Below are positions 42,743 to 63,172 of a DNA stretch of 64,000 nt, in pieces; positions within the stretch are counted from its first letter, which is position 1, and each line of letters starts with the position of its first letter. The position numbers and the translations under genes are program-made. Where the stretch lies: sequence record OR805293.1. The stretch is one strand, 5' to 3'. The notes below the pieces were generated by a model that saw only the letters and a program-made list of their open reading frames with translations, was not told where the DNA came from and did not search any database.

Positions 42743-42786
42743 TTATTCATTTCCTTATTCATTTCCTTATTCATTTCCTTATTCAT
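42743..42786 (+). repeat. 12-bp tandem repeat TTATTCATTTCC x3.7
   Basis: Direct reading. Confidence 0.9.
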
Positions 42787-42790
42787 CTCT

Positions 42791-42930
42791 ATTTCATTTG
42801 TTATTGCAAATAAGAATTAGTCTTATTTGCGTTTGTAATTTCATTTGTTATTGCAAATAAGAATTAGTCTTATTTGCGTTTGCAACGAAAAAGAATATGC
42901 AAATAATAACTAATCTTATTTGCATTTGCA
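42791..42930. promoter_or_regulatory. cluster of three palindromic boxes (GCAAATAAGA-N5-TCTTATTTGC)
   Basis: 45-bp perfect direct repeat 42791-42835/42838-42882, third box at 42898-42924. Confidence 0.75.
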
Positions 42931-43095
42931 CTGCCTATTATATGGATTGGTAGCATACTTGGAAATGGATAGTAAATAAGTAGTTGATTTGTTTATAAAT
43001 TTTAATTCTATATCGTACTGATTGACCTTGCTATATATAGCTCGCGCGCGTATACAAGATGGTAAAAAATAATTTAAAAATATTTTAAAAAATGC

Positions 43096-43219
43096 TTGAC
43101 TTTCCATTACTACGACCTTAAAGTGCGAACTGTAGACGCAGTGTGTAGAGCGCTACATAGTAAGCAACGCAGAAAGTAAACAAAAAATGCTTGACGCAAT
43201 GCAAACTAGGCTCTACACT
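43096..43219 (+). promoter_or_regulatory. tandem sigma70 promoters
   Basis: TTGACT-17-TAAAGT (43096-43124) and TTGACG-17-TACACT (43191-43219), both preceded by AAAAAATGC. Confidence 0.75.
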
Positions 43220-43302
43220 GTATACAAGCTTAAGGGGTAAGTGCCCCGAAAGTGTAGTAAGTAAACAACATAATCCTTCCATCAGCTACAGAGGTATACA
43301 AC

Positions 43303-44007
43303 ATGTCCGTACATATCACTCGTCAACGTACCGACAAACAGCACGTCCTGGCACTGGCAATCAACGGCGTGGTCATCGGCCAGACTATGGCTACTTACAC
43401 CACCCCGAGCAAGCGCACCTGGTCGGCGACCGCTGAAGTCGAACTGGCAGACGGCACCGTCGTACAGTTCGAGCAGAAAGAAGTGTTCAGCGCGATCCGC
43501 ATCACCCGCGAAATCGAGCAGGCGCTCGACGGCAAGGAACTGGCGGCCAAGTACACCCCGGAACCGAAAGTTCCCGGGCAGAAGGGTCCGAAACCGCTCA
43601 CCGACGAAAGCCGGCTCAGCAACGCGATCGCGATCGTCAAGGCGGCCATCACCCACACCGGCTTCGACGAAGCTACCCTGGTGTTCGACGGGGTCGACAA
43701 GGCCAACTTCGAGCAGAACAGCACCTCCGTCGGCAACAAGCTGCGTCGCCTGGGCTTCGTCTTCGAACTCGGCGCCGGCAAGGCGAATAGCGGCAAGGGC
43801 TTCCTGATCAACCGCAAAGCGCAGGCCGAGGCAGAAGCTGCCGAACGCAAGGCCAAGCGCGATGCCGAGAAGAAGGAACGCGAAGAAAAAGCGGCGGCTG
43901 CCAAGCGCGAAGCTGACGAACGCAAGGCCAAGCGCGAAGCCGAACGCGCTGAAAAGGTCGCTGAAAAGAACGCAGCGATCGCCGGGGCAGCGCAGGAAAG
44001 CAAGTAA
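43303..44007 (+). CDS. very GC-rich protein with Ala/Lys/Glu/Arg-rich C-terminal tail; paralog of 62563..63018
   Basis: GAGGT RBS; host-like codons; shared NGVV.GQ...VQF.Q..VFSAIRI domain. Confidence 0.9.
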   Translation: MSVHITRQRTDKQHVLALAINGVVIGQTMATYTTPSKRTWSATAEVELADGTVVQFEQKEVFSAIRITREIEQALDGKELAAKYTPEPKVPGQKGPKPLTDESRLSNAIAIVKAAITHTGFDEATLVFDGVDKANFEQNSTSVGNKLRRLGFVFELGAGKANSGKGFLINRKAQAEAEAAERKAKRDAEKKEREEKAAAAKREADERKAKREAERAEKVAEKNAAIAGAAQESK

Positions 44008-44022
44008 TTGCCCAACTGCGCC

Positions 44023-44052
44023 GAAAGGGGAGCAAATTGCTCCCCTTTCTTC
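44023..44052 (+). terminator. intrinsic terminator
   Basis: GAAAGGGGAGCA-aat-TGCTCCCCTTTC. Confidence 0.85.
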
Positions 44053-44620
44053 ATGACCATATAATCTATATACTACTGTGTCTTTAACTATATTTTCTAT
44101 ATCAGCTAGTTTGTATGCAATAACTTGGTATTCTATGCCAGCGACACAATGCTGTTATATAGACATAATAACACGCGACGCTGATATTTTTATAACCTAT
44201 CCATTTTATAATAACATACTTGTATCTAAAATTATTTCTAATACAATACCTGTAGGAAGTTATGAACACTATATTAGAGATATGTCGTGGAATAAGAAAT
44301 GATCATATAACAGTCAATAATTTTACATATGACTACTATCTAGAGGTAAACACACCTGTGTTTTCTTTAATGATAATTATTCCAACAGTTCCTATATTAG
44401 ACAATACTTGCATTACTTTTATAAAAAAGTATTAATATGAATATATTCTTTATATCAAACAGTCTATCTAATATACTATATCATAAAGCTTATGATATAC
44501 ATATGATAGATATTAATATTAATAATTCTACTTCTATTTGGCTTACATATTCTTTCAATATTGCTAAGGTATCATTTAAATATATTATCTAATTCATTTT
44601 CTTATTGTATGAATTGTAAT

Positions 44621-44689
44621 TGCAAATTACTCTTATTTGTAATTGCATATAAACAATCAGTTGCTATTAAAAGTATTTGCTGTTAATAT
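44621..44689 (+). promoter_or_regulatory. palindromic box plus sigma70 promoter
   Basis: TGCAAATTACTCTTATTTG, then TTGCTA-17-TAATAT (44661-44689). Confidence 0.6.
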
Positions 44690-44973
44690 ATTATATAACA
44701 GTGCAATTGATATTTTAAAATACAGTGTGCAATACATCTTACATGTATTAAAATTTGTGTGTTACTTATTTTGCATTAATGATTAATATACCTCTCATAC
44801 AGTACAAAACTCATACTATAAACAATTTGTTCGGGCGATCGTTCTCAAAATGTATACAAGTGCGAGATGACAATCTAATTTTACTTGTTAGTTTTTATAT
44901 AGAAGGTTCTAAATATAGAAAATTTGTATATAACAACCAATGCCTTGCCAATGCCTTGAAGGGATTTTAGTAT

Positions 44974-45240
44974 ATGCAAACAACAATCGTTAATGCCCTA
45001 AAATCTATTAATGTAAAGTATTCGGATATATTTTACACAAATGGTAATTTGTGTAATACCGTTACAATACGAAATATTCGCAAAAATGGTAAATTAGATT
45101 CGGCAGAACAAATCAATGTAGAATCAGTTGTGAGCAATTATTTGATTCAAAAAGATTTAAATTTGCCCTTTTCTATTCAGTGGGCAAATAATGATTGTTG
45201 CGAAGAGTATACTACACTTATTCTCTTCTTCAGAAAATAG
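44974..45240 (+). CDS. hypothetical protein
   Basis: ORF track. Confidence 0.65.
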   Translation: MQTTIVNALKSINVKYSDIFYTNGNLCNTVTIRNIRKNGKLDSAEQINVESVVSNYLIQKDLNLPFSIQWANNDCCEEYTTLILFFRK

Positions 45241-45413
45241 TGTATGATTAGATTAAAAAGATATGTTCAATTGCATAGCATATACAGATTGTCTTACTAT
45301 GCGCACAACATACATTTTAGCAAAACAAAGAAGATAATGCTTTACGTAGGAAACGCAGGTCCCGTACCCGTAACATGACAGTATATAGCGTTAAAATGTG
45401 CATTTTTTGCACG

Positions 45414-45533
45414 ATTTTGCGGGGTATGCGTTACAAGCAATACACACATACTGCTTTTAAAATGCATGCTTACATGCGCTTTGTAGGGGGTTTAAAACAT
45501 GCTTAAATTAGTTACCACTGTGCTATACAACGT
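45414..45533. other. GA/TC-free tract
   Basis: 120 nt with no GA and no TC. Confidence 0.8.
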
Positions 45534-45711
45534 CTGTGTAGCTTCGTTGATAATGATTGTGTTTGTATGTGGTATAAATTTAGTAATGTATATAGATAAC
45601 AATACTGCCAATAATCCAGTTGTTATCTTTATTTCCCTTCTATCGGTTATTTGGGGTGTTGCGCGGTTAAGCTATATGTTTGTTACTATCCAATTTCAGT
45701 CCAAGAAATAA
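45499..45711 (+). CDS. small membrane protein
   Basis: AGGGGG RBS; two TM segments. Confidence 0.65.
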   Translation: MLKLVTTVLYNVCVASLIMIVFVCGINLVMYIDNNTANNPVVIFISLLSVIWGVARLSYMFVTIQFQSKK

Positions 45712-45726
45712 AAGTATTGGTAACAT

Positions 45727-46068
45727 ATGATAGATAAAAATGGAAATACAGAAGACTTTGATTTTGATAATGCATGCACTATAACTGATCTGTCTGTTCC
45801 TCTTCAGCAAAAAATACAATCATATAAATTAAATAAAATATTGGTTATGGTTGCAATCCTTAAATATTCGAATATAAAACAAGAAATTGGATGTTTCGCT
45901 ATCATATGGGATCATATAATAAAAATAACTGTTGAAGTAAAATGCAATCCGTATGCAGAAACACACATACTCATGCATGCGCATGTATTTTCTAATTCCG
46001 ATTCATGTACTCATAGTGTATTGCTGAATTACAGAAACAAATATTTACCCACTAATTATTATAATTAA
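45727..46068 (+). CDS. hypothetical protein
   Basis: ORF track. Confidence 0.55.
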   Translation: MIDKNGNTEDFDFDNACTITDLSVPLQQKIQSYKLNKILVMVAILKYSNIKQEIGCFAIIWDHIIKITVEVKCNPYAETHILMHAHVFSNSDSCTHSVLLNYRNKYLPTNYYN

Positions 46069-46069
46069 T

Positions 46070-46474
46070 ATGGAAGATATTCTTAAAATTGCCAAACTAA
46101 TCGGGTACGTAAACATACATGCAAATAAACATTTTCAGTATGGTTTTAACAAAGATATGGAACATGTATGTGTTAGTGCTAAGAGTAGGACAAGTATAAA
46201 GGGAATAAAATACCTTTATGTAGTAATGAATATATATTATATATATTGCCAGCAAGAAAGTGTTGCTGTTATATTAAACGAAGTAAACACTGATGAAATG
46301 CCTGTATTAGACAATCTTTATGCTAAGCTCAATGATTTAGTTACACATAAATCTGTTATAAAATTTAAATATACAGAAATAACACAAGAACAAATAGATT
46401 TGTTGAATAATAGTGAAAGATATATAGTATATTTTGACTCTAATTTAGAATACGGAATAGCTTCGTTTTATTAA
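46070..46474 (+). CDS. hypothetical protein
   Basis: ORF track. Confidence 0.65.
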   Translation: MEDILKIAKLIGYVNIHANKHFQYGFNKDMEHVCVSAKSRTSIKGIKYLYVVMNIYYIYCQQESVAVILNEVNTDEMPVLDNLYAKLNDLVTHKSVIKFKYTEITQEQIDLLNNSERYIVYFDSNLEYGIASFY

Positions 46475-46487
46475 TTTTGAGGAATAT

Positions 46488-46685
46488 ATGAAAAAACAAA
46501 CAGGATTTACAGATTGGCCATTGATTAGTTTGGGTACAATTATTATCTTGTGTGTATGGGTACTAATTCTACAATACACAGAAATAAATGTACTAGAAGA
46601 AAAATGTAACAAAGTAGGTGGTATTTTTAATAACACCGTTTGCATACGGTCAGATGCAGTTATTAATTTAGATAAGGTAAAATAA
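46488..46685 (+). CDS. small membrane-anchored protein
   Basis: GAGG RBS; one TM segment. Confidence 0.7.
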   Translation: MKKQTGFTDWPLISLGTIIILCVWVLILQYTEINVLEEKCNKVGGIFNNTVCIRSDAVINLDKVK

Positions 46686-46686
46686 A

Positions 46687-46944
46687 ATGCCAAAACTTTA
46701 CGTTAACAAAAAACATGATACCATTTATCTTCAATTAGATCATTTCTCATCTAATACTGTATCTCCAATTAATTATAACGAAGATGTAGAATATGTAATT
46801 GATAGGATCCGTAGTCTGCATAAATCCGGCTTCGGATTTAGTCATATGAATACTCTGCAAGAATATCTTACGGCAAGAACAGAACAGGATAAGAAGTTTA
46901 AGCTTAAAGTAGAAGACTTCGAAGTAGTATCATTTAAGATTTAA
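46687..46944 (+). CDS. hypothetical protein
   Basis: AAGGT RBS. Confidence 0.75.
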   Translation: MPKLYVNKKHDTIYLQLDHFSSNTVSPINYNEDVEYVIDRIRSLHKSGFGFSHMNTLQEYLTARTEQDKKFKLKVEDFEVVSFKI

Positions 46945-46965
46945 AATTATACATAATCAAAGTAT

Positions 46966-46994
46966 TTGACATTTGATGTGTATACTAGTATAAT
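46966..46994 (+). promoter_or_regulatory. consensus sigma70 promoter
   Basis: TTGACA-17-TATAAT. Confidence 0.9.
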
Positions 46995-47000
46995 TTGCTC

Positions 47001-47625
47001 ATGCTGTCGTAACAGCTACTTTGTTCCATTCACAAGCAGCTCTGTTCCATTATTGGATATTGGTAGTAGAAACTATCCCCATCGTGCCCACAGTATTGTT
47101 CTGTTAGAGACAGGTTAAAGCATACAAAAGTGGGTTATTTAAATTATGATTTTGGGTGCTGAAGTATAGTCGTTAGACAAGGATATGTCTAATGTTGCAA
47201 AGGACTATGCGAAACGTATTATATATCTTATCCGATATTAGATATGTAATAAAAGGATGAAGCTCTGGTAGAAACAGAGTGTAATTCTTGCTTGTATTTC
47301 GCACGAATATACAAAAGAATATACACACCAACTTCAGCATTGATGTAAATTTTCTAGCATAGGTATATAACATCGATGTTCCGGGATTCATTGGAAACAA
47401 TGAGAGAATGATGTAATCTGAGGAAAAAGGTCCCCGCCTCGTCCATATTACGAAATGGTTTTGAGTACTTATGCCCTCGTCCTATATTGGCATATGGGTT
47501 TTATATTTCTCCCGTAATTACGGGAGAATATAATTTCCTGAACCTACTTGGAAATGGACGCTTCTGATGTGCTTCGCACATCATCTAAGGGCCTTCACCC
47601 TTACCGCTAAGAGCAAGAGCAAAAG
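47001..47625 (+). ncRNA. candidate ~600-nt highly structured ncRNA (ncRNA-3)
   Basis: Consensus promoter; no + strand ORF >=60 aa; nested multibranch stems (see findings). Confidence 0.7.
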
Positions 47626-47860
47626 CAATATAATTACAAATAAGAATTAATTATTGTTTAGTTTTATCGTAATGAATATGAAGATAAAAACTAAACAATA
47701 ATTCACATGTAGCGTTAGCTACTGTGAATATCTACTATAGTATTAACCATATATGTATACAAGGGCATAATATGACTATTACTTGTTGACAATATGATAT
47801 GTGTGTTACACTGCATAAATCAAATGTACATTACAATGTTTTGATTATTAGGAACATACT

Positions 47861-48445
47861 ATGTCATTTTCTTTGACTGCTGCTATTAATCGATACACTA
47901 GTCTAATAGAAGAAAATTTCAAAATAAATTATCTGAGGCAGTTTGAGTCAGGATATATCTCGTATAAATTACTAAGAAATAAAGCACTCCTGCATACCGA
48001 AATATCACATGGACTTGATTACATAAAGGTAATTATTTCTTATACATATGTAGAAAATAATGTCGAATTAGATATCAAATCATCTATTGTACATTCGTAT
48101 ATTTCTACTACTGATTGCTCTAAATTTAAAGTAGGAGATATAAAAACGTTTTACGATTCAGTTCCTCGTGGAAATGTTTTTAATATTAAAGAGAATACTC
48201 AAGTTAGCTGGTCAACAGCTAATATTGGAATTTACGAGAATCCGTTTAATCTTAATTATATCTCGAACAATAAGTATATTCGATTAGAAACAGGAGACAT
48301 ATTTGTCTATATTAATGATAGTATGGTAAATGAACTACAAGAACATATGCATGTTCATTCTATATGTACTAACAAAACAAAGAAGTTTTATGTAAGAGAA
48401 ATTGATTTGAATATGCTACATTACAAAAAACACATTATGGAATAA
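47861..48445 (+). CDS. hypothetical protein
   Basis: AGGA RBS; 194 aa. Confidence 0.75.
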   Translation: MSFSLTAAINRYTSLIEENFKINYLRQFESGYISYKLLRNKALLHTEISHGLDYIKVIISYTYVENNVELDIKSSIVHSYISTTDCSKFKVGDIKTFYDSVPRGNVFNIKENTQVSWSTANIGIYENPFNLNYISNNKYIRLETGDIFVYINDSMVNELQEHMHVHSICTNKTKKFYVREIDLNMLHYKKHIME

Positions 48446-48448
48446 AGA

Positions 48449-48997
48449 ATGAACTACAAAGCATTAGAAGTATTTTATTTCTTTCTAGAACATTACAAGG
48501 TAAATCCAGTAGCCGATTTGGAATTTAAATTCGAACCCTCGGGTAGTGATGATCAATCTAAGCGCAAGTCATCACTGTCGTTTGTTAAACGCATTGGTGT
48601 TCTTACTCCTTCATTTAACGAATTATACGAAGTTCAGAATCGATTCATGACAGATCTTCGAGAAATGAATGTAGTATATAAGATAGGATTTAATTATAAT
48701 GCATTCAACGTATTAGCACCTTTGTATGCAAGATATGAAAAGAATGTAAAAGAATTTCGTCGACTTTTAAAGAAATACTCAAATTTCAACGAAGTAACAG
48801 AATATTACAAAAAAGCCAACAACATGTTACCGGACAATGTATACGAAACAATGAAGGAAGATTTTTCATTGTTTAACGACGTTACTACAAAGAGGTTATC
48901 TGAAATAAAACTTTGTTATCCTAATTGGCAAGTATGGGATTCTGAACATCCCAACTGGGAAACAATAAATCAACTTTATAAGAATGCAAAGAAATAA
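48449..48997 (+). CDS. hypothetical protein
   Basis: 182 aa. Confidence 0.8.
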   Translation: MNYKALEVFYFFLEHYKVNPVADLEFKFEPSGSDDQSKRKSSLSFVKRIGVLTPSFNELYEVQNRFMTDLREMNVVYKIGFNYNAFNVLAPLYARYEKNVKEFRRLLKKYSNFNEVTEYYKKANNMLPDNVYETMKEDFSLFNDVTTKRLSEIKLCYPNWQVWDSEHPNWETINQLYKNAKK

Positions 48998-49006
48998 TGC
49001 ATATTT

Positions 49007-49117
49007 AGAAAGGGAATTATAATTCCCTTTCTTTTTGGATCTATATTAGCAAATGCTAATTAATCTTATTTGCACAAATTTAATCCTATTGTGTTTTCTA
49101 TTTTGAAGTGCTACATT
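49007..49117 (+). promoter_or_regulatory. terminator + palindromic box + promoter module
   Basis: Hairpin 49007-49036; box 49049-49075; TTGTGT-17-TACATT (49089-49117) with TG. Confidence 0.65.
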
Positions 49118-49830: not shown

Positions 49831-50325
49831 GTGTTCGAGATGGAGCAAATAGTGAATATGCGAGAAGTGACATTTCTTTCCGCAGTGGATGCCAGCAAGA
49901 TCGAGACGCCGAGCAACGTCATCAGCATCGGCAGCAAGGGTGATTGGTATGCCTTTGCCTGCGATCACAAGCGCGTTCTGCGGCTGGAGTTTGATGACGT
50001 AGACGGATACGTGGGAAGCGATGGCTTTCGAGTGTTCAGCCACATTGACGCCAAGCAGATCCACGACTTCGTGAACGAGTGTGGTGATGAACCGATCATT
50101 GTTCACTGCCAAGCAGGCATGAGCCGATCCGCTGCGGTTGCCAAGTTCCTAGCTGACAAGCGCGGCTACACCTTGAACCTGTCGAAGCCTTGCTTAGGCA
50201 CTACACAATTCTACAACCGCCACGTCTACGGAACGTTGAACCTCAACAACGCCGAAAGCATGAGCGCCTATTACGCAGAGATGGAGCTAGCCGACCGGAC
50301 GCGTGGCCATCCAAAGGAGTCCTGA
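49831..50325 (+). CDS. protein-tyrosine/dual-specificity phosphatase-like protein
   Basis: Active-site CX5R motif IIVHCQAGMSRSAAVA; upstream LEFDD acid loop. Confidence 0.88.
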   Translation: MFEMEQIVNMREVTFLSAVDASKIETPSNVISIGSKGDWYAFACDHKRVLRLEFDDVDGYVGSDGFRVFSHIDAKQIHDFVNECGDEPIIVHCQAGMSRSAAVAKFLADKRGYTLNLSKPCLGTTQFYNRHVYGTLNLNNAESMSAYYAEMELADRTRGHPKES

Positions 50326-50327
50326 TC

Positions 50328-50627
50328 ATGCCTGACATGAGAGAAGAGTTTGAAGCCGCAATCTTTGCGGAAGTGAATGAACAGCGGGCTGCTGAAGGTG
50401 AATTTGTCCTTCAGCATCCAGAAGGGCTATTTGCCCGCGATGACGATGGCTCCTACTTGATCCGTTGGGTCAAGAGCGCATGGTGGGCCTGGCAAGCCAG
50501 CCGCGCAGCTCTGAGAGTGGAGTTGCCGAAACCTCACCCTGCATTTGAGTACGCACCTAGAGCCAAGGTTTTCAATATAACTGACGTTGAGGTAGCCCTC
50601 CAGCAAGCCGGAATCGAGGTGAAGTGA
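50328..50627 (+). CDS. hypothetical protein, temperate-phage-like
   Basis: AAGGAG RBS, ATG 50328; MREEFEA...AWWAWQASRAAL pattern. Confidence 0.75.
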   Translation: MPDMREEFEAAIFAEVNEQRAAEGEFVLQHPEGLFARDDDGSYLIRWVKSAWWAWQASRAALRVELPKPHPAFEYAPRAKVFNITDVEVALQQAGIEVK

Positions 50628-50774
50628 ATGAGAACGCCCATCTTCATCGGCGGATCAATTGGCATAGGAATCGCCTATCTGATGAATCCTGAATATCCCG
50701 CTATCGCGCTTGCAATGGTGTTTAGCGCGGGTACCTCATTGTTCATTCACTATCTATCTGAGGTATGGCCATGA
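50628..50774 (+). CDS. small membrane protein (48 aa, not in ORF track)
   Basis: GAGGT RBS; coupled at both ends; two hydrophobic segments. Confidence 0.55.
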   Translation: MRTPIFIGGSIGIGIAYLMNPEYPAIALAMVFSAGTSLFIHYLSEVWP

Positions 50775-50845
50775 CCGACCACGCAGAGCTGCGGAGGCTG
50801 GCTAAAGAAGTGATCCGAATTGAACGAAATGAGGATGCAGCATGA
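50771..50845 (+). pseudogene. 24-aa Ead/Ea22-like N-terminal remnant
   Basis: MTDHAELRRLAKEV...; ATGA-coupled on both sides. Confidence 0.45.
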
Positions 50846-51378
50846 GCATTGACTGGACCAAGGCACCAGAGGGTGCGACGCACTACCAACCGGAATCACG
50901 CGGCTTCCATGCGGCATGGTTCCGACTTCAAGGGGGGAAGGCTCGCGAAATGTGGGTCGTGAGACCCAGCCGCGCGCTTGAGCACATCATCGATCCGACT
51001 GTCTTCGACGAGAGCATGCAGAACCTGATCGCCCGCCCCGTAGAACCTGCCACCTGGAACGGCCAGGGCCTGCCGCCGGTTGGCCTGATGGTGGAGTGGA
51101 AGGCAGGCCTTGATCACGACTGGCAGCGCGTAACCGTGCTTGCCTACGCCAATGGCGACGCGTGGTTTCAGCCCGAGGATGGCCCGTCTTTCATCGTCGG
51201 CAACCCGGCAAACTTCAGGCGTATCCGCACCCCCGAGCAGTTGGCCGCCGAGGAGCGGGAAAAGGCGATTAATCAGATGATTTCTGATGCTGGATACGTA
51301 GATCCGAAGATTGGCACATTTGTGGCTATGCGCAATCTCTACGACGCCGGCTACCGGCGCCGGGAGGAAGGGAAATGA
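50842..51378 (+). CDS. hypothetical phage protein
   Basis: MSIDWTKAPEGATHY; W.G.GLPPVG; LYDAGYR patterns. Confidence 0.8.
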   Translation: MSIDWTKAPEGATHYQPESRGFHAAWFRLQGGKAREMWVVRPSRALEHIIDPTVFDESMQNLIARPVEPATWNGQGLPPVGLMVEWKAGLDHDWQRVTVLAYANGDAWFQPEDGPSFIVGNPANFRRIRTPEQLAAEEREKAINQMISDAGYVDPKIGTFVAMRNLYDAGYRRREEGK

Positions 51379-51641
51379 GCAGACTGACAGCTGAGCAATC
51401 CCGTGACATAGCGCGAGCGAAAGACGATGTCGATACTATCCTCAACGACATCGCCAAATCAGCCGCAGAAGGAAAGTACGTGTACACTACCCGCGCCTAT
51501 GGGTTCGGCACAGGCGGCGGACGGCGCAGCGACGCGATCCTCAAAGTGTTGCGTAGCCTCGGCTACGACTGTGCGGTGCATGCTGAGGGACGCCAGTCTG
51601 TTGACCTGTGGCTTGAAGTGAAATGGGGAGACAAGCCATGA
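51375..51641 (+). CDS. hypothetical protein
   Basis: ATGA-coupled; GGAAGG RBS. Confidence 0.75.
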   Translation: MSRLTAEQSRDIARAKDDVDTILNDIAKSAAEGKYVYTTRAYGFGTGGGRRSDAILKVLRSLGYDCAVHAEGRQSVDLWLEVKWGDKP

Positions 51642-52057
51642 CTAACAACCCCGGAGATTCAAAAATGATCGTAGAAAACGCCAAGCAAGCTGCCGAAGAC
51701 TTCAAAACTTCCATGGCTAAGATTTTTCCGAATTACATCGCCAGGGCGTCGGTTTCCGATAACCTTGGTCCGGCGATGACAATTTCGTTTGCGAATGTCG
51801 GTTGCGCTTCCGAAGCCCCGAACAGCATTCTGATAAATGCGAGCGGTTACATGCGCTTTATGATGCATTTGTGTGACAATTGCGGGAATGTATTGCCAGA
51901 AGGTTCGCCGGTAGAAATTGAGCTGCTAATGTGGTCTATCCCCTGTCGTTCGGAAGTAATCAAGTTCCGCAAGATCAAGGGCAAGACACCAGCCGAAGCT
52001 ATGCAAAAGCTAGTCAAGTGGTTTGAAAAAAACGCCGAAGCTATCCGGGGTCTGTAA
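51638..52057 (+). CDS. hypothetical protein
   Basis: GGAG RBS, ATG 51638. Confidence 0.75.
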   Translation: MTNNPGDSKMIVENAKQAAEDFKTSMAKIFPNYIARASVSDNLGPAMTISFANVGCASEAPNSILINASGYMRFMMHLCDNCGNVLPEGSPVEIELLMWSIPCRSEVIKFRKIKGKTPAEAMQKLVKWFEKNAEAIRGL

Positions 52058-52081
52058 TGGTCTCCACGTAGGACACGCAGA

Positions 52082-52483
52082 ATGAACATTGTGTTGGACA
52101 AATTGCTGTTTGGCGGTTTCATCGACCAGCAGCGCAATGAACTTGCCCAGCAACAACTGAATCGGTTGTTTGCCAAGTACGGTGAGCCGAAGATTGGTAT
52201 CACACGGGCATGCTTTCTATCTAAGCATTACGTCCTGAAGTTCCCGATTAATGACAGGGGTGAGCGGTGCAACGATTGGGAAGGTAGCTGTTCCGGCAGC
52301 TACTTGGCACGCGGACGCTGGCTAGAAATCGGAGGCTTCATTTGTGTCATGCAAGAGCGTTTGGTTGAAGTGGATTGGAAGAACAACACCCATGCAAACT
52401 TTCCTGATTGGGTAGGCAGCATAGATTGTGGTCAAGTCGGCTACGATAAACATGGCGTTCTGAAAGCGTATGACTTCGGGTGA
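52082..52483 (+). CDS. compact protein-kinase-like protein
   Basis: GITRACF, YVLKFP (catalytic Lys), N.WE, MQERL, DCGQVG, terminal YDFG. Confidence 0.5.
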   Translation: MNIVLDKLLFGGFIDQQRNELAQQQLNRLFAKYGEPKIGITRACFLSKHYVLKFPINDRGERCNDWEGSCSGSYLARGRWLEIGGFICVMQERLVEVDWKNNTHANFPDWVGSIDCGQVGYDKHGVLKAYDFG

Positions 52484-52486
52484 AGC

Positions 52487-52678
52487 ATGACCATCAATTT
52501 GTTTGTCGTCAACATAAAGAACGAACCTATCCCAACCGACCACAAGTCGATACTCCGCTATCTTGGCCTTAGCCTGCACACGCAAGGCCGTCGTGTATCT
52601 GCCAAATTCAGCAGCGGTAAGTTGAAGCTGAACAACTACAACATCGAATTTTTTCACATGGCGGAGATGATTCCATGA
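52487..52678 (+). CDS. hypothetical protein
   Basis: ORF track; coupled to next gene. Confidence 0.65.
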   Translation: MTINLFVVNIKNEPIPTDHKSILRYLGLSLHTQGRRVSAKFSSGKLKLNNYNIEFFHMAEMIP

Positions 52679-53211
52679 CCGACACCAACAAAATAAAAAA
52701 GCTAGCAAAACTGGACGAGATCGACAGGCTCAGGGCAGAGCGAGACGCCGCCCTGGCCAGGGTCGTAGAGCTGGAACGCGGCAAGGTCTACGTCGAAGCC
52801 CGGCAATGCGACGAGTGCCAGCATGTCGGGATCAACGATTCCGCCACGGTCGTGGCTGCCTGCCACGAATGCGATTGGACCGGACCAGAGCCAGAAGAGG
52901 ATAAGTGCCCCGGTTGCCAGAGGGAGAATTGCATGGCCGCAGCCTGCCCGCAGTGTGGCGCCCGATATGTCCTTGTTGCCAGCGAAGAGATAGCCGCCCC
53001 TGTAGCCCAGGCTCAGCACAGCGTGCCAGAGGAATGGCACTGCATGCTAGCGAATCTTCAGTGGCACTACGAGCCGTATGACGATCACTACCACCGTGAC
53101 CAGGGCTTCTATTGCCCGGTCTGTGGCGGTGAGAAGGACGAAGGGCACAAGCAGGGTTGCAACCTGGCCAAGTTGATCGCCACTGCCGACCTCAAAGAAG
53201 ACAAGAAATAA
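52675..53211 (+). CDS. chimeric Ead/Ea22-like protein with Cys-rich zinc-binding repeats
   Basis: MTDTNK, DEIDRLRAERDAALARV, several CxxC motifs. Confidence 0.7.
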   Translation: MTDTNKIKKLAKLDEIDRLRAERDAALARVVELERGKVYVEARQCDECQHVGINDSATVVAACHECDWTGPEPEEDKCPGCQRENCMAAACPQCGARYVLVASEEIAAPVAQAQHSVPEEWHCMLANLQWHYEPYDDHYHRDQGFYCPVCGGEKDEGHKQGCNLAKLIATADLKEDKK

Positions 53212-55815: not shown

Positions 55816-55945
55816 ATGCTTTATAACGCATAAATTTACATAGCTAATACATACATATTGCTAACGTTAAAAAGCGCATTATATAGCTTATAATTGCATA
55901 TTGTGCAATGCATTTGTTGGTGTTATATTAAACATGCGCAACAAT
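55816..55945. other. GA/TC-free tract
   Basis: 130 nt with no GA and no TC. Confidence 0.8.
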
Positions 55946-57216: not shown

Positions 57217-57245
57217 TAACTCATAAATCCGCAGGAGTAGCAGTT

Positions 57246-57413: not shown

Positions 57414-57685
57414 ATGAATATGTTGATACACACAGAGCTAAAAGAATACTAATAATTTCTTCTATATGTTTTTTTGTAACTGGCATTCTGATAGGATACA
57501 GCCTAGCGTCGAATTCTGAGTCTGCTTCGTTATATATGCAGTATAAGGAACTTGTAAAGTCTTGCGAAGCAGAATTGCCAAGAAATGAAAATTGCCAAGT
57601 AATCGTATATGCTATACCAACACCCGAAGTAGAAGAAGAGAAACTAGAAATACAAACAATTCTTAGAGGGGTCGAAATAAAATGA
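57410..57685 (+). CDS. membrane-anchored small protein
   Basis: One TM segment; coupled. Confidence 0.7.
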   Translation: MNEYVDTHRAKRILIISSICFFVTGILIGYSLASNSESASLYMQYKELVKSCEAELPRNENCQVIVYAIPTPEVEEEKLEIQTILRGVEIK

Positions 57686-57918
57686 GCGTATACTGTAATT
57701 GCATAGCATGCGGTGGAGATGATCCGTATGCTGTATGTGAAAATGTGTTAATGGATATCCAAAAGCACAAATATAATACTGGTCCCAGCTGGGGGCTGGT
57801 AGTTGCGGCAGTATTGTGTTTGGTAGGAATGGGATTAGCAGGTAACGCAGCACTATCTGATAAAAAAGAAACACCGTGCGAAACTACACAACAAAAACAA
57901 GAGGTGTATAATGAGTAA
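57682..57918 (+). CDS. small membrane protein with Cys motif
   Basis: CNCIAC; one TM segment. Confidence 0.65.
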   Translation: MSVYCNCIACGGDDPYAVCENVLMDIQKHKYNTGPSWGLVVAAVLCLVGMGLAGNAALSDKKETPCETTQQKQEVYNE

Positions 57919-58117
57919 CAAAACAACAGACATGCTGGTAGATGAATTTCTGTGCGAGCGTGCATCTTTTTCTCCGTTTAGCGAAGGTGTTCATGCAGCT
58001 AAACTAGGGCAGAAATATACAGACTGCCCGTATACCAAAAATGAGCCGTATGAACGTAACGAATGGATTCGAGGACATCAAATGTGGCATGATTATTCTG
58101 TTCAACAATACAAATAA
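57911..58117 (+). CDS. hypothetical protein
   Basis: GAGGT RBS; G...CPY...WIRG pattern. Confidence 0.75.
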   Translation: MSNKTTDMLVDEFLCERASFSPFSEGVHAAKLGQKYTDCPYTKNEPYERNEWIRGHQMWHDYSVQQYK

Positions 58118-58132
58118 TATTCAGAGGATATT

Positions 58133-58336
58133 ATGAAGAAACTATCTATGTGCGATTTTGCCAAATGGAAGGCAAACTATTACAGCACTAATAAATCCGG
58201 TCAGCCACTCCGGCTAGGACAAGCATTTATTAACGAATTTTCCGAACAGGGTGATATGCCTCAGCCAAATCTATATTATGAAGAAGATAATGCAACTGCT
58301 GAGCTTATCATTCTAGAAAAATACATTATGTACTAA
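58133..58336 (+). CDS. hypothetical phage protein
   Basis: GAGG RBS; LRLGQAFIN motif. Confidence 0.75.
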   Translation: MKKLSMCDFAKWKANYYSTNKSGQPLRLGQAFINEFSEQGDMPQPNLYYEEDNATAELIILEKYIMY

Positions 58337-58346
58337 GGAAGTAGTA

Positions 58347-58541
58347 ATGTATCTTGCACACCTATTCGCTTTGGTCCCGTCTATGTTTGCAGTATTAATT
58401 AATGCTATCTTTATTAAATACGGTTTGGGACCTGCTTCTATAATAGTATTTATGGCCTTAGTTGTAACTGTAACAGGAATTGGGTCTGTAATAGATATGA
58501 TGCGTGCATTGTCTGAAGTAGACAATATTATTGATAGATAG
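58347..58541 (+). CDS. small membrane protein
   Basis: AAGGA RBS; two TM segments. Confidence 0.7.
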   Translation: MYLAHLFALVPSMFAVLINAIFIKYGLGPASIIVFMALVVTVTGIGSVIDMMRALSEVDNIIDR

Positions 58542-58866
58542 TATTTATGTATGCATAAGAGAACTTATGAAACTCAACGAAGTTACTACAATTTCTGATC
58601 TAGACAATATTCCTGTCACTGACAAATTTATAGTTGTCGGCGAAGATATGGTAGGTCTTGCTTTTATCGATAACGATGGAAAGTTAAATGATGGATTCTT
58701 TTTTGAGTGTACTTATACTCAGAATAAGGAACAAATATTTAAAGCTGTTCAACATTTAAAAAAACAAGTAGATGAATTAAATAATTGTAATAAAGAGAAA
58801 GTTATAGCACATATCATGCGAGCTCCTGAGTTTGCATATGTTTGGGTATACTTTGAACAAAAATAA
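58531..58866 (+). CDS. hypothetical protein (start possibly downstream)
   Basis: ORF track. Confidence 0.65.
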   Translation: MIDSIYVCIRELMKLNEVTTISDLDNIPVTDKFIVVGEDMVGLAFIDNDGKLNDGFFFECTYTQNKEQIFKAVQHLKKQVDELNNCNKEKVIAHIMRAPEFAYVWVYFEQK

Positions 58867-59148
58867 TAGTTCTATATTTTTTGATATATGCAAACGCAAA
58901 TAATTAGAATTTGCAGAACCTGTTACAAACTTTCTGTTTATATAAAATACAATCATGCTATAATAGTTTATAATAAAAATGTAAGCATATAGCACCAAAA
59001 GAACAAAGATGAAGTTCATTCTTTGTCTAAAGATTAAGTTTGCTGAGAATTTTGATAAGAAACTTCAACTGCTAGATATTATATCAATAGTGCATTTATC
59101 ATGCATTGAACAGAAAAGAAGTACTCTTTTATCTACGAGGAAAAGCAA

Positions 59149-59364
59149 ATGAAATACAAAATCATTCTTCAAAACCGTAGCAATGGTGTTGTCGCTGAAT
59201 TTTCGGTAGATAACGAAATTAACCCCGAGATCATGGATACTTCTATTATTGTTCATGAAGGGACATCGTATATGTTTACTGGCCAGCGCGGTTCTTACTA
59301 CGATATCCTTTATTTTAGTGAAATATATAAGACTATTAACACGACAGACTTGTCGTTGCTATAA
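59149..59364 (+). CDS. hypothetical protein
   Basis: GAGG RBS. Confidence 0.75.
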   Translation: MKYKIILQNRSNGVVAEFSVDNEINPEIMDTSIIVHEGTSYMFTGQRGSYYDILYFSEIYKTINTTDLSLL

Positions 59365-59437
59365 CAGAAAACGCTTTACAATAGCTCTAAATGTGCTATT
59401 ATGTAGTTGTACATAAAACAACGCAGGAGATTATATC

Positions 59438-59635
59438 ATGCGTAGCACACTCGGAGTAGAACATGCATCGAGAGAAATTCTTTCTGCATGGGTTGATGTA
59501 ATGCAGCAACTCAACTGTGAGCATTTCTATAGCGAACTGAAAGACAATGCAGTTCGCTTAGATTTACAGGAATATATGTATACTGAACGTCTCGTTCAGT
59601 ATTATACAGATCTTCCAGTCACTAATGCTGGTTGA
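59438..59635 (+). CDS. hypothetical protein
   Basis: AGGAG RBS. Confidence 0.75.
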   Translation: MRSTLGVEHASREILSAWVDVMQQLNCEHFYSELKDNAVRLDLQEYMYTERLVQYYTDLPVTNAG

Positions 59636-59665
59636 TGCCTTCGCCGGGCGTGAACTACATTTATT

Positions 59666-59777
59666 AGGAAAGGGGTTTTAAGCCCCTTTCCTTTTGATTG
59701 TTAAGTGTAAGTGCAAATTAATCTTATTTGCTTGTTACAATTTAGTTCTTGAATTCACACATAATAGTATGTATAGT
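59666..59777 (+). promoter_or_regulatory. terminator + palindromic box + promoter module
   Basis: Hairpin 59666-59695; box 59707-59731; TTGAAT-17-TATAGT (59749-59777). Confidence 0.7.
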
Positions 59778-59814
59778 TTTAATATATAAGATACCAACAT
59801 GCGAGGTTGTAAAA

Positions 59815-60267
59815 ATGAAACTTCATAATATGAATGGTAATATTTTTATTCGGTTTGAAGTAGATACTTCGTCGGATAATTTTGTAGAAAAAGTTTACGA
59901 AGAAATTATGCAGCTTCCTGCAAAATTGTATTTCGAGAAGATAGAACGTAGAACTTGGTTCTGTAGCTTTTACACAGGCTACGACGAATTGGTAGAATTC
60001 GTTAATGAAATAAAAGACAGAGTTAGTTCAGAAGGTGTTTTCTTTGACAGGCCATTGCAGCTAACTCTTATCAATTCGGGCGGGGTAGAAGTAAATATTT
60101 CCGATATAGAACCAGATCTTCACTATCTTTTTGATAACGATATTACAACTACAAAACTTATCTCTATGGAAGGATCGTGCAATATGGTAGATTTGCTCAT
60201 GTGCGAATGGGTACCTATTAACATTCGTACTTCTATTGCTAAGGCATTTACTGACAAATTTTTGTAA
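59815..60267 (+). CDS. hypothetical protein
   Basis: GAGGT RBS, ATG 59815. Confidence 0.75.
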   Translation: MKLHNMNGNIFIRFEVDTSSDNFVEKVYEEIMQLPAKLYFEKIERRTWFCSFYTGYDELVEFVNEIKDRVSSEGVFFDRPLQLTLINSGGVEVNISDIEPDLHYLFDNDITTTKLISMEGSCNMVDLLMCEWVPINIRTSIAKAFTDKFL

Positions 60268-60359
60268 TAAAATACCTGTTGACGCATATAGCAATATGCG
60301 CAATAATATGCACGAAAGCAAGAACAGATCCAAATAACCTTTTTATAAGAGATTATATT

Positions 60360-61007
60360 ATGTCTAAGTATCTTTCTTTTAGCGTAAACGTAGACATGGA
60401 CAACACTGGTCTGTTGAAATGGTTGCGTCCTACCACCGGTCGGTTGGATGGATTCGAAGAGAGTGTTAAAAACTTCGTTTCTTCTTTCCGCTCAGTCGAG
60501 TCGAGCCCTACGGTGTTTCAAGTTTACGATGACGATGATCAGCCGTTGCAAGTAAGCAACATGAGCTGCTTCTTCCGATACTTTCCGGTGTATGGTATGT
60601 GCCTTGCACCGGGTTCGATGGTCAGGGAACAATATCGTCGGGAGATCCTCGACTACACTACTGACGAGTTCTGTTCATTCAGTAACTACTTCAGTGACGG
60701 CAAGGCCATCCGCGGCGGGGCAGTCTTGTGGTGGGATGTAGAGAAAGACTTGGTATGGTCTGTTAGTCCCGAATTGATTCGCCTTGTATATGCCCGCTTG
60801 CAAAGTGATATGGACATCGGGTGGTATCATCTCGGGCAAGAAGTTATGGCTGTAGTTCCCCTTCGTTCGTATCCCAACGATGTTGCCCGATGGAAATATG
60901 TACAAGGTAATATCTGCGGCATCGACGATCAAGTGAGCATTCGCAGCAATGTCGACGGTCGAGTCACCCGGCTTAATTGGGAATACATCGTGACCCAAGG
61001 GGGATAA
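60360..61007 (+). CDS. GC-enriched hypothetical protein
   Basis: ATG 60360; GC rises sharply at the start codon. Confidence 0.8.
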   Translation: MSKYLSFSVNVDMDNTGLLKWLRPTTGRLDGFEESVKNFVSSFRSVESSPTVFQVYDDDDQPLQVSNMSCFFRYFPVYGMCLAPGSMVREQYRREILDYTTDEFCSFSNYFSDGKAIRGGAVLWWDVEKDLVWSVSPELIRLVYARLQSDMDIGWYHLGQEVMAVVPLRSYPNDVARWKYVQGNICGIDDQVSIRSNVDGRVTRLNWEYIVTQGG

Positions 61008-61008
61008 T

Positions 61009-61236
61009 ATGGGCGGTCTTGCTAATATAGTTGCATTCATAGCTTCTATTGTTGCAATTGTTACTGGAAATATCTGGTATTTTATCGCACTGTTGCTATG
61101 CACAGCATTTATGTCGCCCGAACGAAAAGGATCATTAATTGATGTATTTTCGGTCATTGTCGGGATTGGTGCTATATTTAACGGAGACATTGCATGGGGC
61201 ATAGTGTTCATAGCATTAGTGATAATAGTTAAATAG
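61009..61236 (+). CDS. small membrane protein
   Basis: Four short hydrophobic segments; GGGGGA RBS. Confidence 0.7.
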   Translation: MGGLANIVAFIASIVAIVTGNIWYFIALLLCTAFMSPERKGSLIDVFSVIVGIGAIFNGDIAWGIVFIALVIIVK

Positions 61237-61265
61237 AAAGGAAGGGGGTTTAACCCCTTCCTTTT
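61237..61265 (+). terminator. intrinsic terminator
   Basis: AAAGGAAGGGG/CCCCTTCCTTT. Confidence 0.85.
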
Positions 61266-61671
61266 ATTGTAGGTGTTAAATGTCATCAATTTTTTATCTT
61301 AGCAAATGGACAGAATACATAGTAATTTTAAACAATAAGAGAATAAGGTTAAGTACAGCGAAATATTCTATAGGATATGTATCACTAGAAACACCTCGTC
61401 GCACATTTTACTGGACACTTTTTAAATGAAATACAATAATCATATCTAATTAGCTACCTACATTTATATCAAAAACCATTCTATGAAATATATTTCCTAA
61501 ATCATATTACAAAAGTTATATTTGAATTTCGGATTCATATCTCAACCTTGCATTGCAATATAAAATGCGAATATGAGTGTGCTATATGTATTTGCATATG
61601 CATGTACATACGCATAAACGTATTAAGAAATACAATTTATTTTATCCTATACAATTATCTTTAATACCTAT

Positions 61672-62016
61672 ATGTTGTTTGATAATAAAAGTATAATAAG
61701 TAAAAGATATTATCCATTGTATAATGGTTTTAATATATTTCGCTGTAGTGTTGGATTTATATATTTTTCATATGATAAAATGTCATTTATTCACGACATA
61801 TTCATGCAAACCATTTCGTTGTTCCTTATGACGTTATTATTGTTTTTACTTATAACTCCGTTATATTATATAGGATTGAAAAATCCAGTCAATATAACTA
61901 CATTTGTTTCGTGTTTAATAATAACCATTCTTATAACAAGTTATTATTTTATGTCAGTTTTGACTTATATATTCTGTATTACTGTTCAGTCAATAATTTA
62001 TAAAAGAAAGAAATAA
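61672..62016 (+). CDS. hydrophobic hypothetical protein
   Basis: ORF track; very AT-rich. Confidence 0.4.
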   Translation: MLFDNKSIISKRYYPLYNGFNIFRCSVGFIYFSYDKMSFIHDIFMQTISLFLMTLLLFLLITPLYYIGLKNPVNITTFVSCLIITILITSYYFMSVLTYIFCITVQSIIYKRKK

Positions 62017-62028
62017 TTTAGTTTCTTT

Positions 62029-62094
62029 TTCATTATCTTTTTCATTATCTTTTTCATTTTCATTATCTTTTTCATTTTCTTTATCTTTTATCAT
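62029..62094 (+). repeat. 12-bp tandem repeat TTCATTATCTTT (3 exact copies plus variants)
   Basis: Copies at 62029, 62041, 62059; variant at 62071. Confidence 0.85.
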
Positions 62095-62213
62095 TGCAAA
62101 TACAAATAATAATTATTCTTATTTGCATTTAGTGATGTAAATAATTCTTATTTGTAATTGCGATTAATTCTTATTTGCTACAATAGATAGAATAAGAATA
62201 ATTCACATTTGCA
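62095..62213. promoter_or_regulatory. cluster of four palindromic boxes or half-boxes
   Basis: CAAATAATAAT-T-ATTCTTATTTG (62103-62125); TTCTTATTTG at ~62146 and ~62168; inverted AATAAGAAT at 62191. Confidence 0.7.
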
Positions 62214-62369
62214 ATGCCGCTAAAAGCGCTGTAAGCGCTGTATGTTGCGTAGTAATGCTAAGCAATGCATTAGTACAGCTACGCGCACAAACGCTGTTAT
62301 ATGCGCTTGTAGCGCGTTTTAGGGCCCATGCGCATGCGTACACCTGTAGCTTTACATAGCAAAATGCAG
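62204..62369. other. GA/TC-free tract
   Basis: 166 nt with no GA and no TC; GpC-rich. Confidence 0.85.
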
Positions 62370-62498
62370 AAAAGACGTCGTCTATTGACGTGCCTGTCTT
62401 AATAGAAATATACAATTGTACAATACCTGTGAAATCCTACACACTACAGACATGCAAACAAGCAATGTGCTTGCAAGCATAAAAGTTTTTAAAAAGTA

Positions 62499-62527
62499 GT
62501 AGACATTGTGTAGCATCCCTAGTAAGC
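62499..62527 (+). promoter_or_regulatory. sigma70-like promoter
   Basis: TAGACA-17-TAAGCT. Confidence 0.6.
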
Positions 62528-62562
62528 TACACACACATAAACAACACAACGGAGTACAAGCT

Positions 62563-63018
62563 ATGTCTAATGTAAGCATCCCTGCAGTAACGGTAGAGAA
62601 CATCGGCACCCTGCGCATTGTGCGCACCGCTAACAAGGAGGTCGGAAGTGTGCTCGACCTAAAAGTTAACGGGGTAGTAGTAGGGCAAGCTTTCCCGCTC
62701 TACAGCACAAAAACCCAGCGTAGCTGGAACGCAAGCATGCACGCTACCGTTAACGGTGTAGAGGTGCAGTTTGCACAGGAAGGCGTGTTCAGTGCAATCC
62801 GCATTGCACGGGCGTTCGAGGATGCAGTAAAGCATGCCGTTAGCAACGGCGAGCAAGGGCAACCCCTCCCCGCGCCGGCGGCGCAGTCCGATGCCCCGGC
62901 AACGGCAGAAGCGCAAGCAGAAGCCCCGGCGGCGCAGACCGAGGATGCGCCGGAGACCCTGGCAGCCGAAGCTAAGCCCGCCCGCAAAGGCGGCAGCAAA
63001 GGCGGCAGCAAAAAGTAA
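62563..63018 (+). CDS. very GC-rich protein with Ala/Pro linker and basic tail; paralog of 43303..44007
   Basis: GGAG RBS, ATG 62563; NGVVVGQ...VQFAQEGVFSAIRI; ends KPARKGGSKGGSKK. Confidence 0.88.
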   Translation: MSNVSIPAVTVENIGTLRIVRTANKEVGSVLDLKVNGVVVGQAFPLYSTKTQRSWNASMHATVNGVEVQFAQEGVFSAIRIARAFEDAVKHAVSNGEQGQPLPAPAAQSDAPATAEAQAEAPAAQTEDAPETLAAEAKPARKGGSKGGSKK

Positions 63019-63172
63019 GCGCTGCTAACACAGGAAAGGGGCAACTGCCCCTTTCCTTTTATGTCCTAGTTGTAAATGCAAATTAATCTTATTTGCATTT
63101 GCACAAGTCATTCTCCTGTTGCATTACTGCTTTAAGATGTTAGTATATATGTAGCTATACGGAGTAATTGCT

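Follow-up and report, generated by a model that had tools for sequence, protein, structure and literature searches.

Why does the early region of a jumbo phage carry, at two places, a lone GC-rich gene behind a tandem repeat, a cluster of palindromes and promoters of its own, and what are the two encoded proteins for? We asked this of modules A and B of Pseudomonas phage Deifobo, a jumbo phage like PA5oct, in a 64,000-nucleotide stretch of record OR805293.1 (the window; bases 42600-46600 and 61500-64000 are 100% identical to Deifobo). Position 1 of the window corresponds to position 124001 of the 288-kb Deifobo genome, and these two segments are 95 to 97% identical to ten other PA5oct-like jumbo phage records, genus Wroclawvirus. 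A first-pass annotation had described the modules as twins, each with a 12-mer array, a box cluster, strong promoters, a gene for a paralogous protein and a terminator, and had proposed that the proteins regulate the boxes. Both arrays, both clusters, both genes and both terminators are present on the sequence. We lean toward a different account of their roles, in which A and B are two of three Deifobo copies of an old, vertically inherited early-expression cassette, each driving one member of a phage-specific protein family.

Layout and conservation of the cassette

Judged by their alignment, the repeat-plus-box blocks of the two modules (42737-42930 and 62020-62213) are homologous. They are colinear along about 175 nucleotides, with a local alignment score of 78 versus 25.8 +/- 4.5 for 300 dinucleotide shuffles (maximum 41; z 11.7). 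The spacer, promoter, and leader parts that follow could not be distinguished from dinucleotide shuffles (z 2.3); in this shuffled comparison, which the first-pass annotation had named as a refuting test, the upstream similarity holds for the repeat-plus-box blocks. The elements are as follows.

Module A
42697-42728, + strand: terminator of the upstream noncoding RNA (ncRNA; PA5oct ncRNA001), with the hairpin AGAAAGGCA...TGCCTTTCT ahead of a T run; the annotated PA5oct ncRNA stops at this point, and the terminator forms the 5' boundary of the module
42742-42786, + strand: 12-mer tandem repeat CTTATTCATTTC, 3.8 copies with 100% matches (Tandem Repeats Finder), G-free on the + strand
42806-42830, 42853-42877, and 42899-42923, no strand: three 25-bp palindromic boxes matching a Fur-family operator core, GCAAATAAGAATTAGTCTTATTTGC twice and one variant
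43096-43124 and 43191-43219, + strand: tandem predicted sigma-70-type promoters TTGACT-17-TAAAGT and TTGACG-17-TACACT, each with 9/12 matches
43303-44007, + strand: gene A, an open reading frame (ORF) of 234 amino acids, GC 0.61, GC at third codon positions (GC3) 0.76
44023-44049, + strand: terminator hairpin of gene A, GAAAGGGGAGCA / TGCTCCCCTTTC, read from the sequence

Module B
62024-62095, + strand: 12-mer tandem repeat TCTTTTTCATTA, 5.9 copies with 85% matches (Tandem Repeats Finder), G-free on the + strand
62105-62209, no strand: four boxes matching the Fur-family operator core, starting at 62105, 62134, 62157, and 62191, with 1, 4, 4, and 2 mismatches to the 19-bp core
62204-62369, + strand: 166-nucleotide spacer without a GA or TC dinucleotide
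62416-62445 and 62500-62528, + strand: tandem promoter-like sites TTGTAC-18-CACACT and TAGACA-17-TAAGCT with a leader hairpin between them, both below the 9/12 threshold of the scan
62563-63018, + strand: gene B, an ORF of 151 amino acids, GC 0.60, GC3 63%; ortholog of PA5oct EST35_0086
63032-63057, + strand: terminator of gene B, AGGAAAGGGGCAACTGCCCCTTTCCT and a T run (terminator scan); a single box follows at 63075-63093

The module A boxes have 1, 1, and 3 mismatches out of 18 core positions, and the exact 25-bp palindrome GCAAATAAGAATTAGTCTTATTTGC, present in two copies, occurred in none of 100 shuffles. The module B array carries GATAAT hexamers on its reverse complement. Of the promoters, which had been called strong in both modules, the tandem sites of module A reach the threshold of the promoter scan; the 62500 site has 8/12 matches and is not listed by the promoter scan, so its consensus does not mark it as strong. 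The module A promoters are identical in PA5oct and have a homologous TTGACC and TTGACG pair in a distant A-type locus (L007). Homologous and better-matching versions of the module B sites are found in loci L005, L011, L012, and L013. The terminator of gene A was missed by the terminator scan because its T run is short.

When Deifobo is compared with PA5oct, almost nothing varies in the boxes, spacers, and promoters upstream of the genes (all but one base of the module B boxes is kept), and the indels fall in the 12-mer arrays. The A tract is 72 bp longer in PA5oct, so array length varies between relatives, and the B array differs in both unit sequence and copy number. What is kept in the arrays is their composition, without G on the + strand, and not their sequence. 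Transcribed directly downstream of an intrinsic terminator, RNA with C and without G would make a suitable loading site for Rho, at which read-through is caught.

The layout recurs in distant uncultured phages: a terminator, a G-free pyrimidine tract, three or four palindromic boxes, a 170- to 300-bp spacer, tandem sigma-70 promoters, a strong ribosome-binding site, a GC-rich ORF, and a terminator. In the distant B-type locus L012, a terminator and a short CT-rich tract lead into four boxes, of which the first is a perfect AATAAGAATAATTCTTATT. The spacer after them measures about 290 bp, with parts recognizably homologous to module B, and is followed by a TTGTAC-type promoter, a leader hairpin, TAGACA-17-CATAAT, an AGGAGT ribosome-binding site, and the gene. 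Three further loci (L009, L010, and L011) have three boxes 290 to 400 bp upstream and a promoter block as in L012, and L013 keeps the promoters and has no box within 1 kb of its family gene. The A-type locus L007 begins with a terminator resembling 42697-42728, continues with a G-poor pyrimidine tract of about 160 nucleotides in place of the 12-mer array, and has its tandem promoters homologous to those at 43096 and 43191; no site in it matches the 19-bp core, and TGCAAAT/ATTTGCA motifs lie further upstream. From these comparisons, the cassette layout is older than the PA5oct group.

Some parts of the modules belong to the region at large. Hairpin terminators of the GAAAGGGG type end both genes and are also found at 49007, 55748, 59666, 61243, and 63621; they are thus a general terminator type of the region and not special to the twins. 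A composite of terminator, box, and promoter recurs at 49007-49077, 59666-59777, 63032-63155, and 63621-63739, and a 122-nucleotide version is duplicated with 93% identity (63034-63155 versus 63618-63739), its two copies flanking a small gene in an arrangement like that of T4-type PeSL cassettes.

Several features of the spacers were recorded in passing. Six GA/TC-free tracts of 120 to 222 nucleotides (14539-14760, 12174-12344, 62204-62369, 24253-24395, 55816-55945, and 45414-45533) occur in the window, where the longest in 200 shuffles was 111 nucleotides; they appear to overlap noncoding, promoter-rich, or ncRNA regions. The module B spacer includes a 17-nucleotide alternating purine-pyrimidine run at 62327-62343 and has modest RNA folding (z -2.15); an RNA structure common to both spacers was dropped as a candidate, the module A value being z +1.16. 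In five family loci, GC-containing alternating runs of 14 to 39 nucleotides were seen, each time between boxes and promoters (window 43043-43056 and 62327-62343; L007 2207-2245; L011 383-404; L013 1084-1099). Across the window, their count is not significant (15 observed versus 7.9 expected, maximum 17), and only the recurring position is of note. Weak promoter-like sites with the -10 element inside the last box were seen at 42880-42907 (TTGCAA-16-AATAAT) and 62175-62202 (TTGCTA-16-AATAAT). Fur-repressed promoters classically have this arrangement, but such matches are common in AT-rich DNA. An Rfam scan found 12 tRNAs and nothing else.

A phage-specific protein family encoded by GC-rich early genes

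Proteins A and B share an N-terminal domain (BLASTP E 2e-16, 48% identity over 61 residues) and by this measure are paralogs, in line with the first-pass annotation. The search for further paralogs and their upstream architecture that it had called for turned up distant loci with a like cassette and a third Deifobo gene. This gene, C, encodes 145 amino acids, has a GC content of 0.59 between flanks of 0.33, and lies 5 kb past the window end (locus L005 1489-1926, equal to Deifobo 193145-193582; stored protein match 193157-193555). It has one box 189 bp upstream, two just downstream, and no 12-mer array, and its protein ends in the tail KKGSSKKRKEAQPEA.

A profile of A and B (the profile and fold analyses covered these two paralogs) gave 18 matches among 1.84 billion representative proteins. 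Sixteen were real, 100 to 250 amino acids long, and all on phage or metagenome contigs; P0016 and P0020 were rejected as long repeat proteins, the latter an RTX repeat protein. There was no cellular homolog among these representatives, and a word-index homolog search gave orthologs only. In a set of 50,697 phage genomes, the family was encoded by all 11 PA5oct-like records and by no others. As far as these searches tell, the family is small and phage specific, with three members in Deifobo.

All members have a three-part build, consisting of an N-terminal domain of about 90 residues, an acidic, disordered linker rich in Ala, Pro, and Glu, and a short Lys/Gly/Ser-rich tail. The domain is marked by the motifs NG..VG, Y.T.TQR.W, and GVFSA.RI, and the tail (KPARKGGSKGGSKK in B; elsewhere PARKGSGKGSSKK or KGKKGSKK) ranks second among the conserved features of the family. 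In protein B, the net charge is +2 for the N-terminal domain (about residues 1 to 95), -7 for the linker, and +5 for the tail. One metagenome homolog, P0019, has the tail PAKRGPGRPRIKKS, which includes KRGPGRPRIKK and with it the GRP core of an AT-hook; the other family tails have no GRP core. AlphaFold2 predicts that five or six strands form an antiparallel sheet in the N-terminal domain, with one helix after it (pLDDT 78 from two sequences, rising to about 90 from 19). The A-type members (A itself and P0014, from L007) are extended by a disordered stretch rich in Pro and Lys, by an alpha/beta domain, and by a charged helix about 60 residues long; in the model of A, the N-terminal domain spans 1-78, the predicted disordered linker 80-99, the alpha/beta domain 100-170, and the helix 171-233.

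Neither library nor structure searches placed the proteins in a known class. Pfam, PHROGs, and NCBIfam gave no match, a profile search of PDB sequences gave nothing below E 0.7, and scores in the ESM Atlas were 0.80 or lower. The best Foldseek hits in the PDB had E 0.39 for the N-terminal domain model and 0.038 for the whole of protein A; ThermoDBP-RP2 and leviviral coat proteins led the list, with TM scores of 0.15 to 0.38, and were treated as not significant. Foldseek against BFVD returned the phage's own paralogs only. In the wide VIA-align search, the best Z for the N-terminal domain was 5.3, below the usual noise level, and the list for full-length A was filled by its C-terminal helix. 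No helix-turn-helix, Fur fold, or solved DNA-binding fold was matched by A or B in the library, PDB sequence, and fold searches, and no nucleoid-protein signature (HU/IHF, H-NS/MvaT, Fis, Lrp, Dps, or AT-hook) was found in Pfam, PHROGs, NCBIfam, or the PDB, the GRP core of P0019 apart. DNA binding through the Lys-rich tail is possible.

The genes stand out from their surroundings by base composition (61% GC for A and 60% for B versus 25 to 35% around them). In loci L005, L007, L009, L011, L012, and L013, gene GC is 0.56 to 0.65 versus 0.33 to 0.47 for the rest of the locus, and the excess over the flanks was 9 to 26 points at every locus checked. The proteins of these GC-rich relatives are only 22 to 40% identical to A. 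An excess kept at such divergence, in a family with no cellular members, makes recent import from a GC-rich genome unlikely, and it is simpler to assume a lasting pressure for GC-ending codons. Gene A prefers CTG, ACC, GGC, CGC, ATC, and GAA, which we take to be the codons of well-expressed Pseudomonas genes. The claim that the two are the most GC-rich genes of the window is true only jointly, as genes at 50842-51378 (61%) and 52675-53211 (59%) are comparable. The latter two belong to a block of seven or eight early genes at 49831-53211, of 46 to 61% GC with AT-rich neighbors on either side. Its first gene (49831-50322) has a subthreshold dual-specificity phosphatase match (E 9.7e-6, 25.9 bits versus a cutoff of 33.5), and the other genes of the block have no Pfam match.

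The PA5oct counterparts of both modules lie in the early region, inside the 39-kb direct terminal repeat, where most genes from gp34 to gp105 are highly transcribed at 5 min (PMC7318152). Early PA5oct transcription is almost exclusively from the + strand, and rifampicin abolishes phage production, indicating that this transcription depends on host RNA polymerase (PMC7318152). The PA5oct ortholog of A, EST35_0038, is annotated as "structural protein, ESI-MS/MS"; the B ortholog, EST35_0086, has no mass spectrometry note. The early transcription in the literature and the codon content suggest abundance, and A and B are very probably abundant early products, as had been proposed. Both genes have host-like, GC-rich codons, and at least A reaches the virion.

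In the GenBank entry for Deifobo, no + strand gene is given at these places; antisense ORFs (Deiofobo_0305, 0366, and 0367) are annotated at window 43395-44060 (-) and 62382-63044 (-). In favor of the + frames of A and B are the PA5oct annotation, which draws on transcriptome sequencing and mass spectrometry, the existence of distant homologs, the GC3 values, and the signals for promoter, ribosome binding, and termination.

Palindromic boxes and Fur-family operators

With up to 4 mismatches allowed, the window has 19 matches to the 19-bp core of the boxes, AATAAGAATNATTCTTATT, versus a mean of 6.0 in shuffles (maximum 15). Across the 288-kb genome, the pattern TAATTAATCTTATTTGCA with up to 3 mismatches has 19 forward and 2 reverse matches, versus 0 and 1 for a reversed control. 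Both reverse matches and 17 of the 19 forward ones fall within 166.8 to 194.6 kb, and the two forward matches elsewhere are weak, with 3 mismatches. Single boxes lie 12 to 14 bp downstream of a terminator, with a -35 hexamer about 20 bp further on. Clusters of at least three boxes are rare, and most precede family genes (A and B in Deifobo and the genes of L009, L011, and L012). Boxes and box clusters also precede unrelated early genes. Beyond the window and away from family genes, further clusters were seen at Deifobo 188964-189216 (five or six sites) and 189672-189716 (two), which correspond to locus L134 964-1234 and 1672-1716.

The core agrees with the classical Fur consensus GATAATGATAATCATTATC (cited in PMC4506495) at 13/19 positions; in the 7-1-7 form TAAGAATnATTCTTA, 5/7 positions per half are shared with TGATAAT. 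We scanned one genome per prokaryote species for exact cores and found matches in at least 120 genomes, many of them GC-rich proteobacteria, although no Pseudomonas genome was among the matches listed. The 139 ORFs flanking these cores include 20 FUR, 11 rubrerythrin, 8 flavin reductase, 7 ZIP, 7 ECF sigma, 5 iron-type binding proteins, 4 TonB receptors, 4 FeoB, and 3 FTR1. Ten neighbor genes from the proteobacterial matches included three TonB-dependent receptors, one FeoB, one FTR1 iron permease, and one iron-type binding protein. Fur-family and iron genes beside exact cores argue that the palindrome is an operator of Fur-family regulators across bacteria and, from these neighborhoods, that the box core is of the Fur-family operator type. 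No FUR homolog was found in the phage by a search that, as a control, found the family in 14/14 reference genomes. The outer G and C of the 25-bp palindrome are strongly kept in the phage and not conserved at the bacterial sites (G 0.20 to 0.24 and C 0.16).

Going by the match of the core, host Fur is the most economical candidate for the binder of the boxes; a phage factor with a wider footprint is a further candidate. Because the boxes match Fur-family operators, A and B are probably not what binds them. The arrays lie 170 to 300 bp upstream of the promoters and do not overlie them. Fur can act from an upstream position, displacing H-NS to activate Escherichia coli ftnA, or at Salmonella hilD (PMC3788343, PMC3089636), and at least one Pseudomonas phage counters MvaT/MvaU (PMC4635203, PMC8501957). 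DNA of 25 to 30% GC inside Pseudomonas would be a natural target of MvaT/MvaU, and the position of the arrays resembles the anti-H-NS sites of Fur; by this analogy we regard counter-silencing as a lead.

Competing explanations and a proposed role

The most direct competitor extends the original proposal, with A, B, and C as sequence-specific binders of the palindromic boxes that autoregulate through their own clusters and govern all boxed early promoters. We consider this quite improbable, even though clusters of three or more boxes stand before the family genes named above, the outer GC pairs are phage specific and unexplained by Fur-family sites, and the well-conserved N-terminal domain (TQRxW, GVFSAxRI) could dimerize on a palindrome. 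No known DNA-binding fold or motif was found in that domain, and the core is identical to a bacterial Fur-family operator. The cluster of five or six boxes at Deifobo 188964-189216 precedes an unrelated gene, the family gene of L013 has no nearby box, and L007 lacks this core. Three paralogs as diverged as these (33 to 48% identity) would also be unusual for one operator specificity. The idea that the proteins regulate a box regulon is thus not supported.

Alternatively, the proteins could be internal virion proteins, ejected with the DNA to shield the incoming genome like P1 Dar or the T4 internal proteins, with early resynthesis refilling the pool. The virion mass spectrometry behind the structural annotation of the PA5oct A ortholog (PMC7318152) speaks for this, and charged tails would suit contact with packaged DNA. 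Against that, only A was detected, the genes are early whereas PA5oct structural genes are transcribed in the middle and late phases (PMC7318152), and among the 93 virion-associated proteins of that study, abundant contaminants are plausible. We regard this role as unlikely. Capture is less likely still: if the modules were morons, GC-rich genes recently taken from the host or a GC-rich phage, their resemblance would be generic intergenic furniture. A GC content of 60 to 61% where the DNA around the genes has about 30%, promoters and a terminator for each gene, and the generic, duplicated terminator-box-promoter cassettes all fit that description. It leaves unexplained the absence of cellular homologs from the 1.84 billion representatives and the word-index search, a GC excess at eight loci encoding proteins 22 to 40% identical, the specific colinearity of the repeat-plus-box blocks, and the presence of the genes throughout the PA5oct-like genomes, whereas a recent import should be absent from close relatives or have homologs in hosts or unrelated phages. 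We therefore give recent capture very little weight.

We return to the early-expression cassette as the account we favor by a small measure. Selection for host-preferred codons would keep the genes GC-rich, and these codons would yield much protein in the first minutes, before phage tRNAs come into play. Each cassette would be insulated from read-through by the terminator upstream and by the G-free tract. The box arrays would be bound by host Fur or by a phage factor and, once bound, may tune or protect the promoters from upstream, rather than serving as operators of the encoded proteins. The proteins themselves would act stoichiometrically. Their folded N-terminal domain may serve assembly. 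The most likely partner of the tethered Lys/Gly/Ser tail is a polyanion, probably AT-rich phage DNA, and such contact would also explain why A travels with the packaged genome.

Several observations weigh against parts of this account. The transcription starts are predictions, and codon adaptation was judged from GC3 and general Pseudomonas codon preferences. Protein B, with an isoelectric point of 6.7, is not basic overall; no recognizable nucleic-acid-binding fold was found in the N-terminal domain (Foldseek E of at least 0.04, best Z 5.3); and carry-over of a highly abundant protein may account for A in virions. Since the outer GC pairs are not kept at bacterial Fur-family sites, host Fur may not be the binder. 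Finally, box clusters accompany two of the three family genes in Deifobo and five of the six B/C-type loci, counts that leave some probability to a specific link between boxes and family.

Among early phage proteins that act on host nucleoid proteins or coat DNA, T4 gp32 and SSB have a comparable build, in which a folded domain is joined through a disordered linker to a short charged tip. The early, abundant expression of a small protein by a phage with DNA far more AT-rich than that of its host recalls Mip of phage LUZ24 (PMC4635203, PMC8501957). There is no sequence or fold similarity between A or B and Mip, gp32, or SSB, and the charges are the reverse of those in SSB, with an acidic linker and a basic tip. 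The genomic units resemble the PeSL cassettes of T4-type phages, where a composite of terminator and early promoter is repeated between small early genes of a variable region, is duplicated as a unit, and bounds gene cassettes (PMC2839356, PMC4122927). Deifobo differs in having a palindromic Fur-type box between terminator and promoter and, before the family genes, three or four copies behind a variable 12-mer array. Like the Deifobo genes, morons of lambdoid and other phages stand singly between a promoter and a terminator of their own and differ from their neighbors in base composition; the Deifobo family, in contrast, is old in its phage lineage, has three paralogs and no cellular relatives, and keeps its GC excess across diverged lineages. 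Compared with the Fur boxes of E. coli ftnA and Salmonella hilD (PMC3788343, PMC3089636, PMC4506495), the phage sites share the 19-bp, AT-rich 9-1-9 palindrome and the arrays upstream of promoters in AT-rich DNA. They differ in belonging to a virulent phage without a Fur gene and in forming a 25-bp palindrome whose outer GC pairs are absent from the bacterial sites.

New here are the protein family and its conserved GC excess, the multi-box cassette in distant relatives, the test of the core against bacterial neighbor genes, and the difference in the outer flanks. A bolder version can be stated, although we think it quite unlikely to be right. In a virulent jumbo phage, arrays of host Fur operators would let host iron status set the dose of a new kind of DNA-coating or counter-silencing protein, with an unclassified beta-sheet domain and a tethered AT-hook-like tail, that keeps the very AT-rich phage DNA free of MvaT/MvaU; or else the family would be a new beta-sheet DNA-binding fold that adopted Fur-type operators and vies with Fur for them.

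Paride, to which the isolate Deifobo is related, replicates on deep-dormant Pseudomonas aeruginosa, and their group is the only one known to do so (PMC10761892). Because the group grows on a deep-dormant host, its expression in the first minutes and its wiring to host regulators are of practical interest. The A/B family is among its most strongly signaled early products, with tandem promoters, host-like codons, three paralogs, and a cassette kept in distant relatives, and yet it has gone without annotation. The conserved link of this family to multicopy Fur-type operators would offer a concrete and cheap way to ask whether a lytic phage reads the iron sensor of its host.

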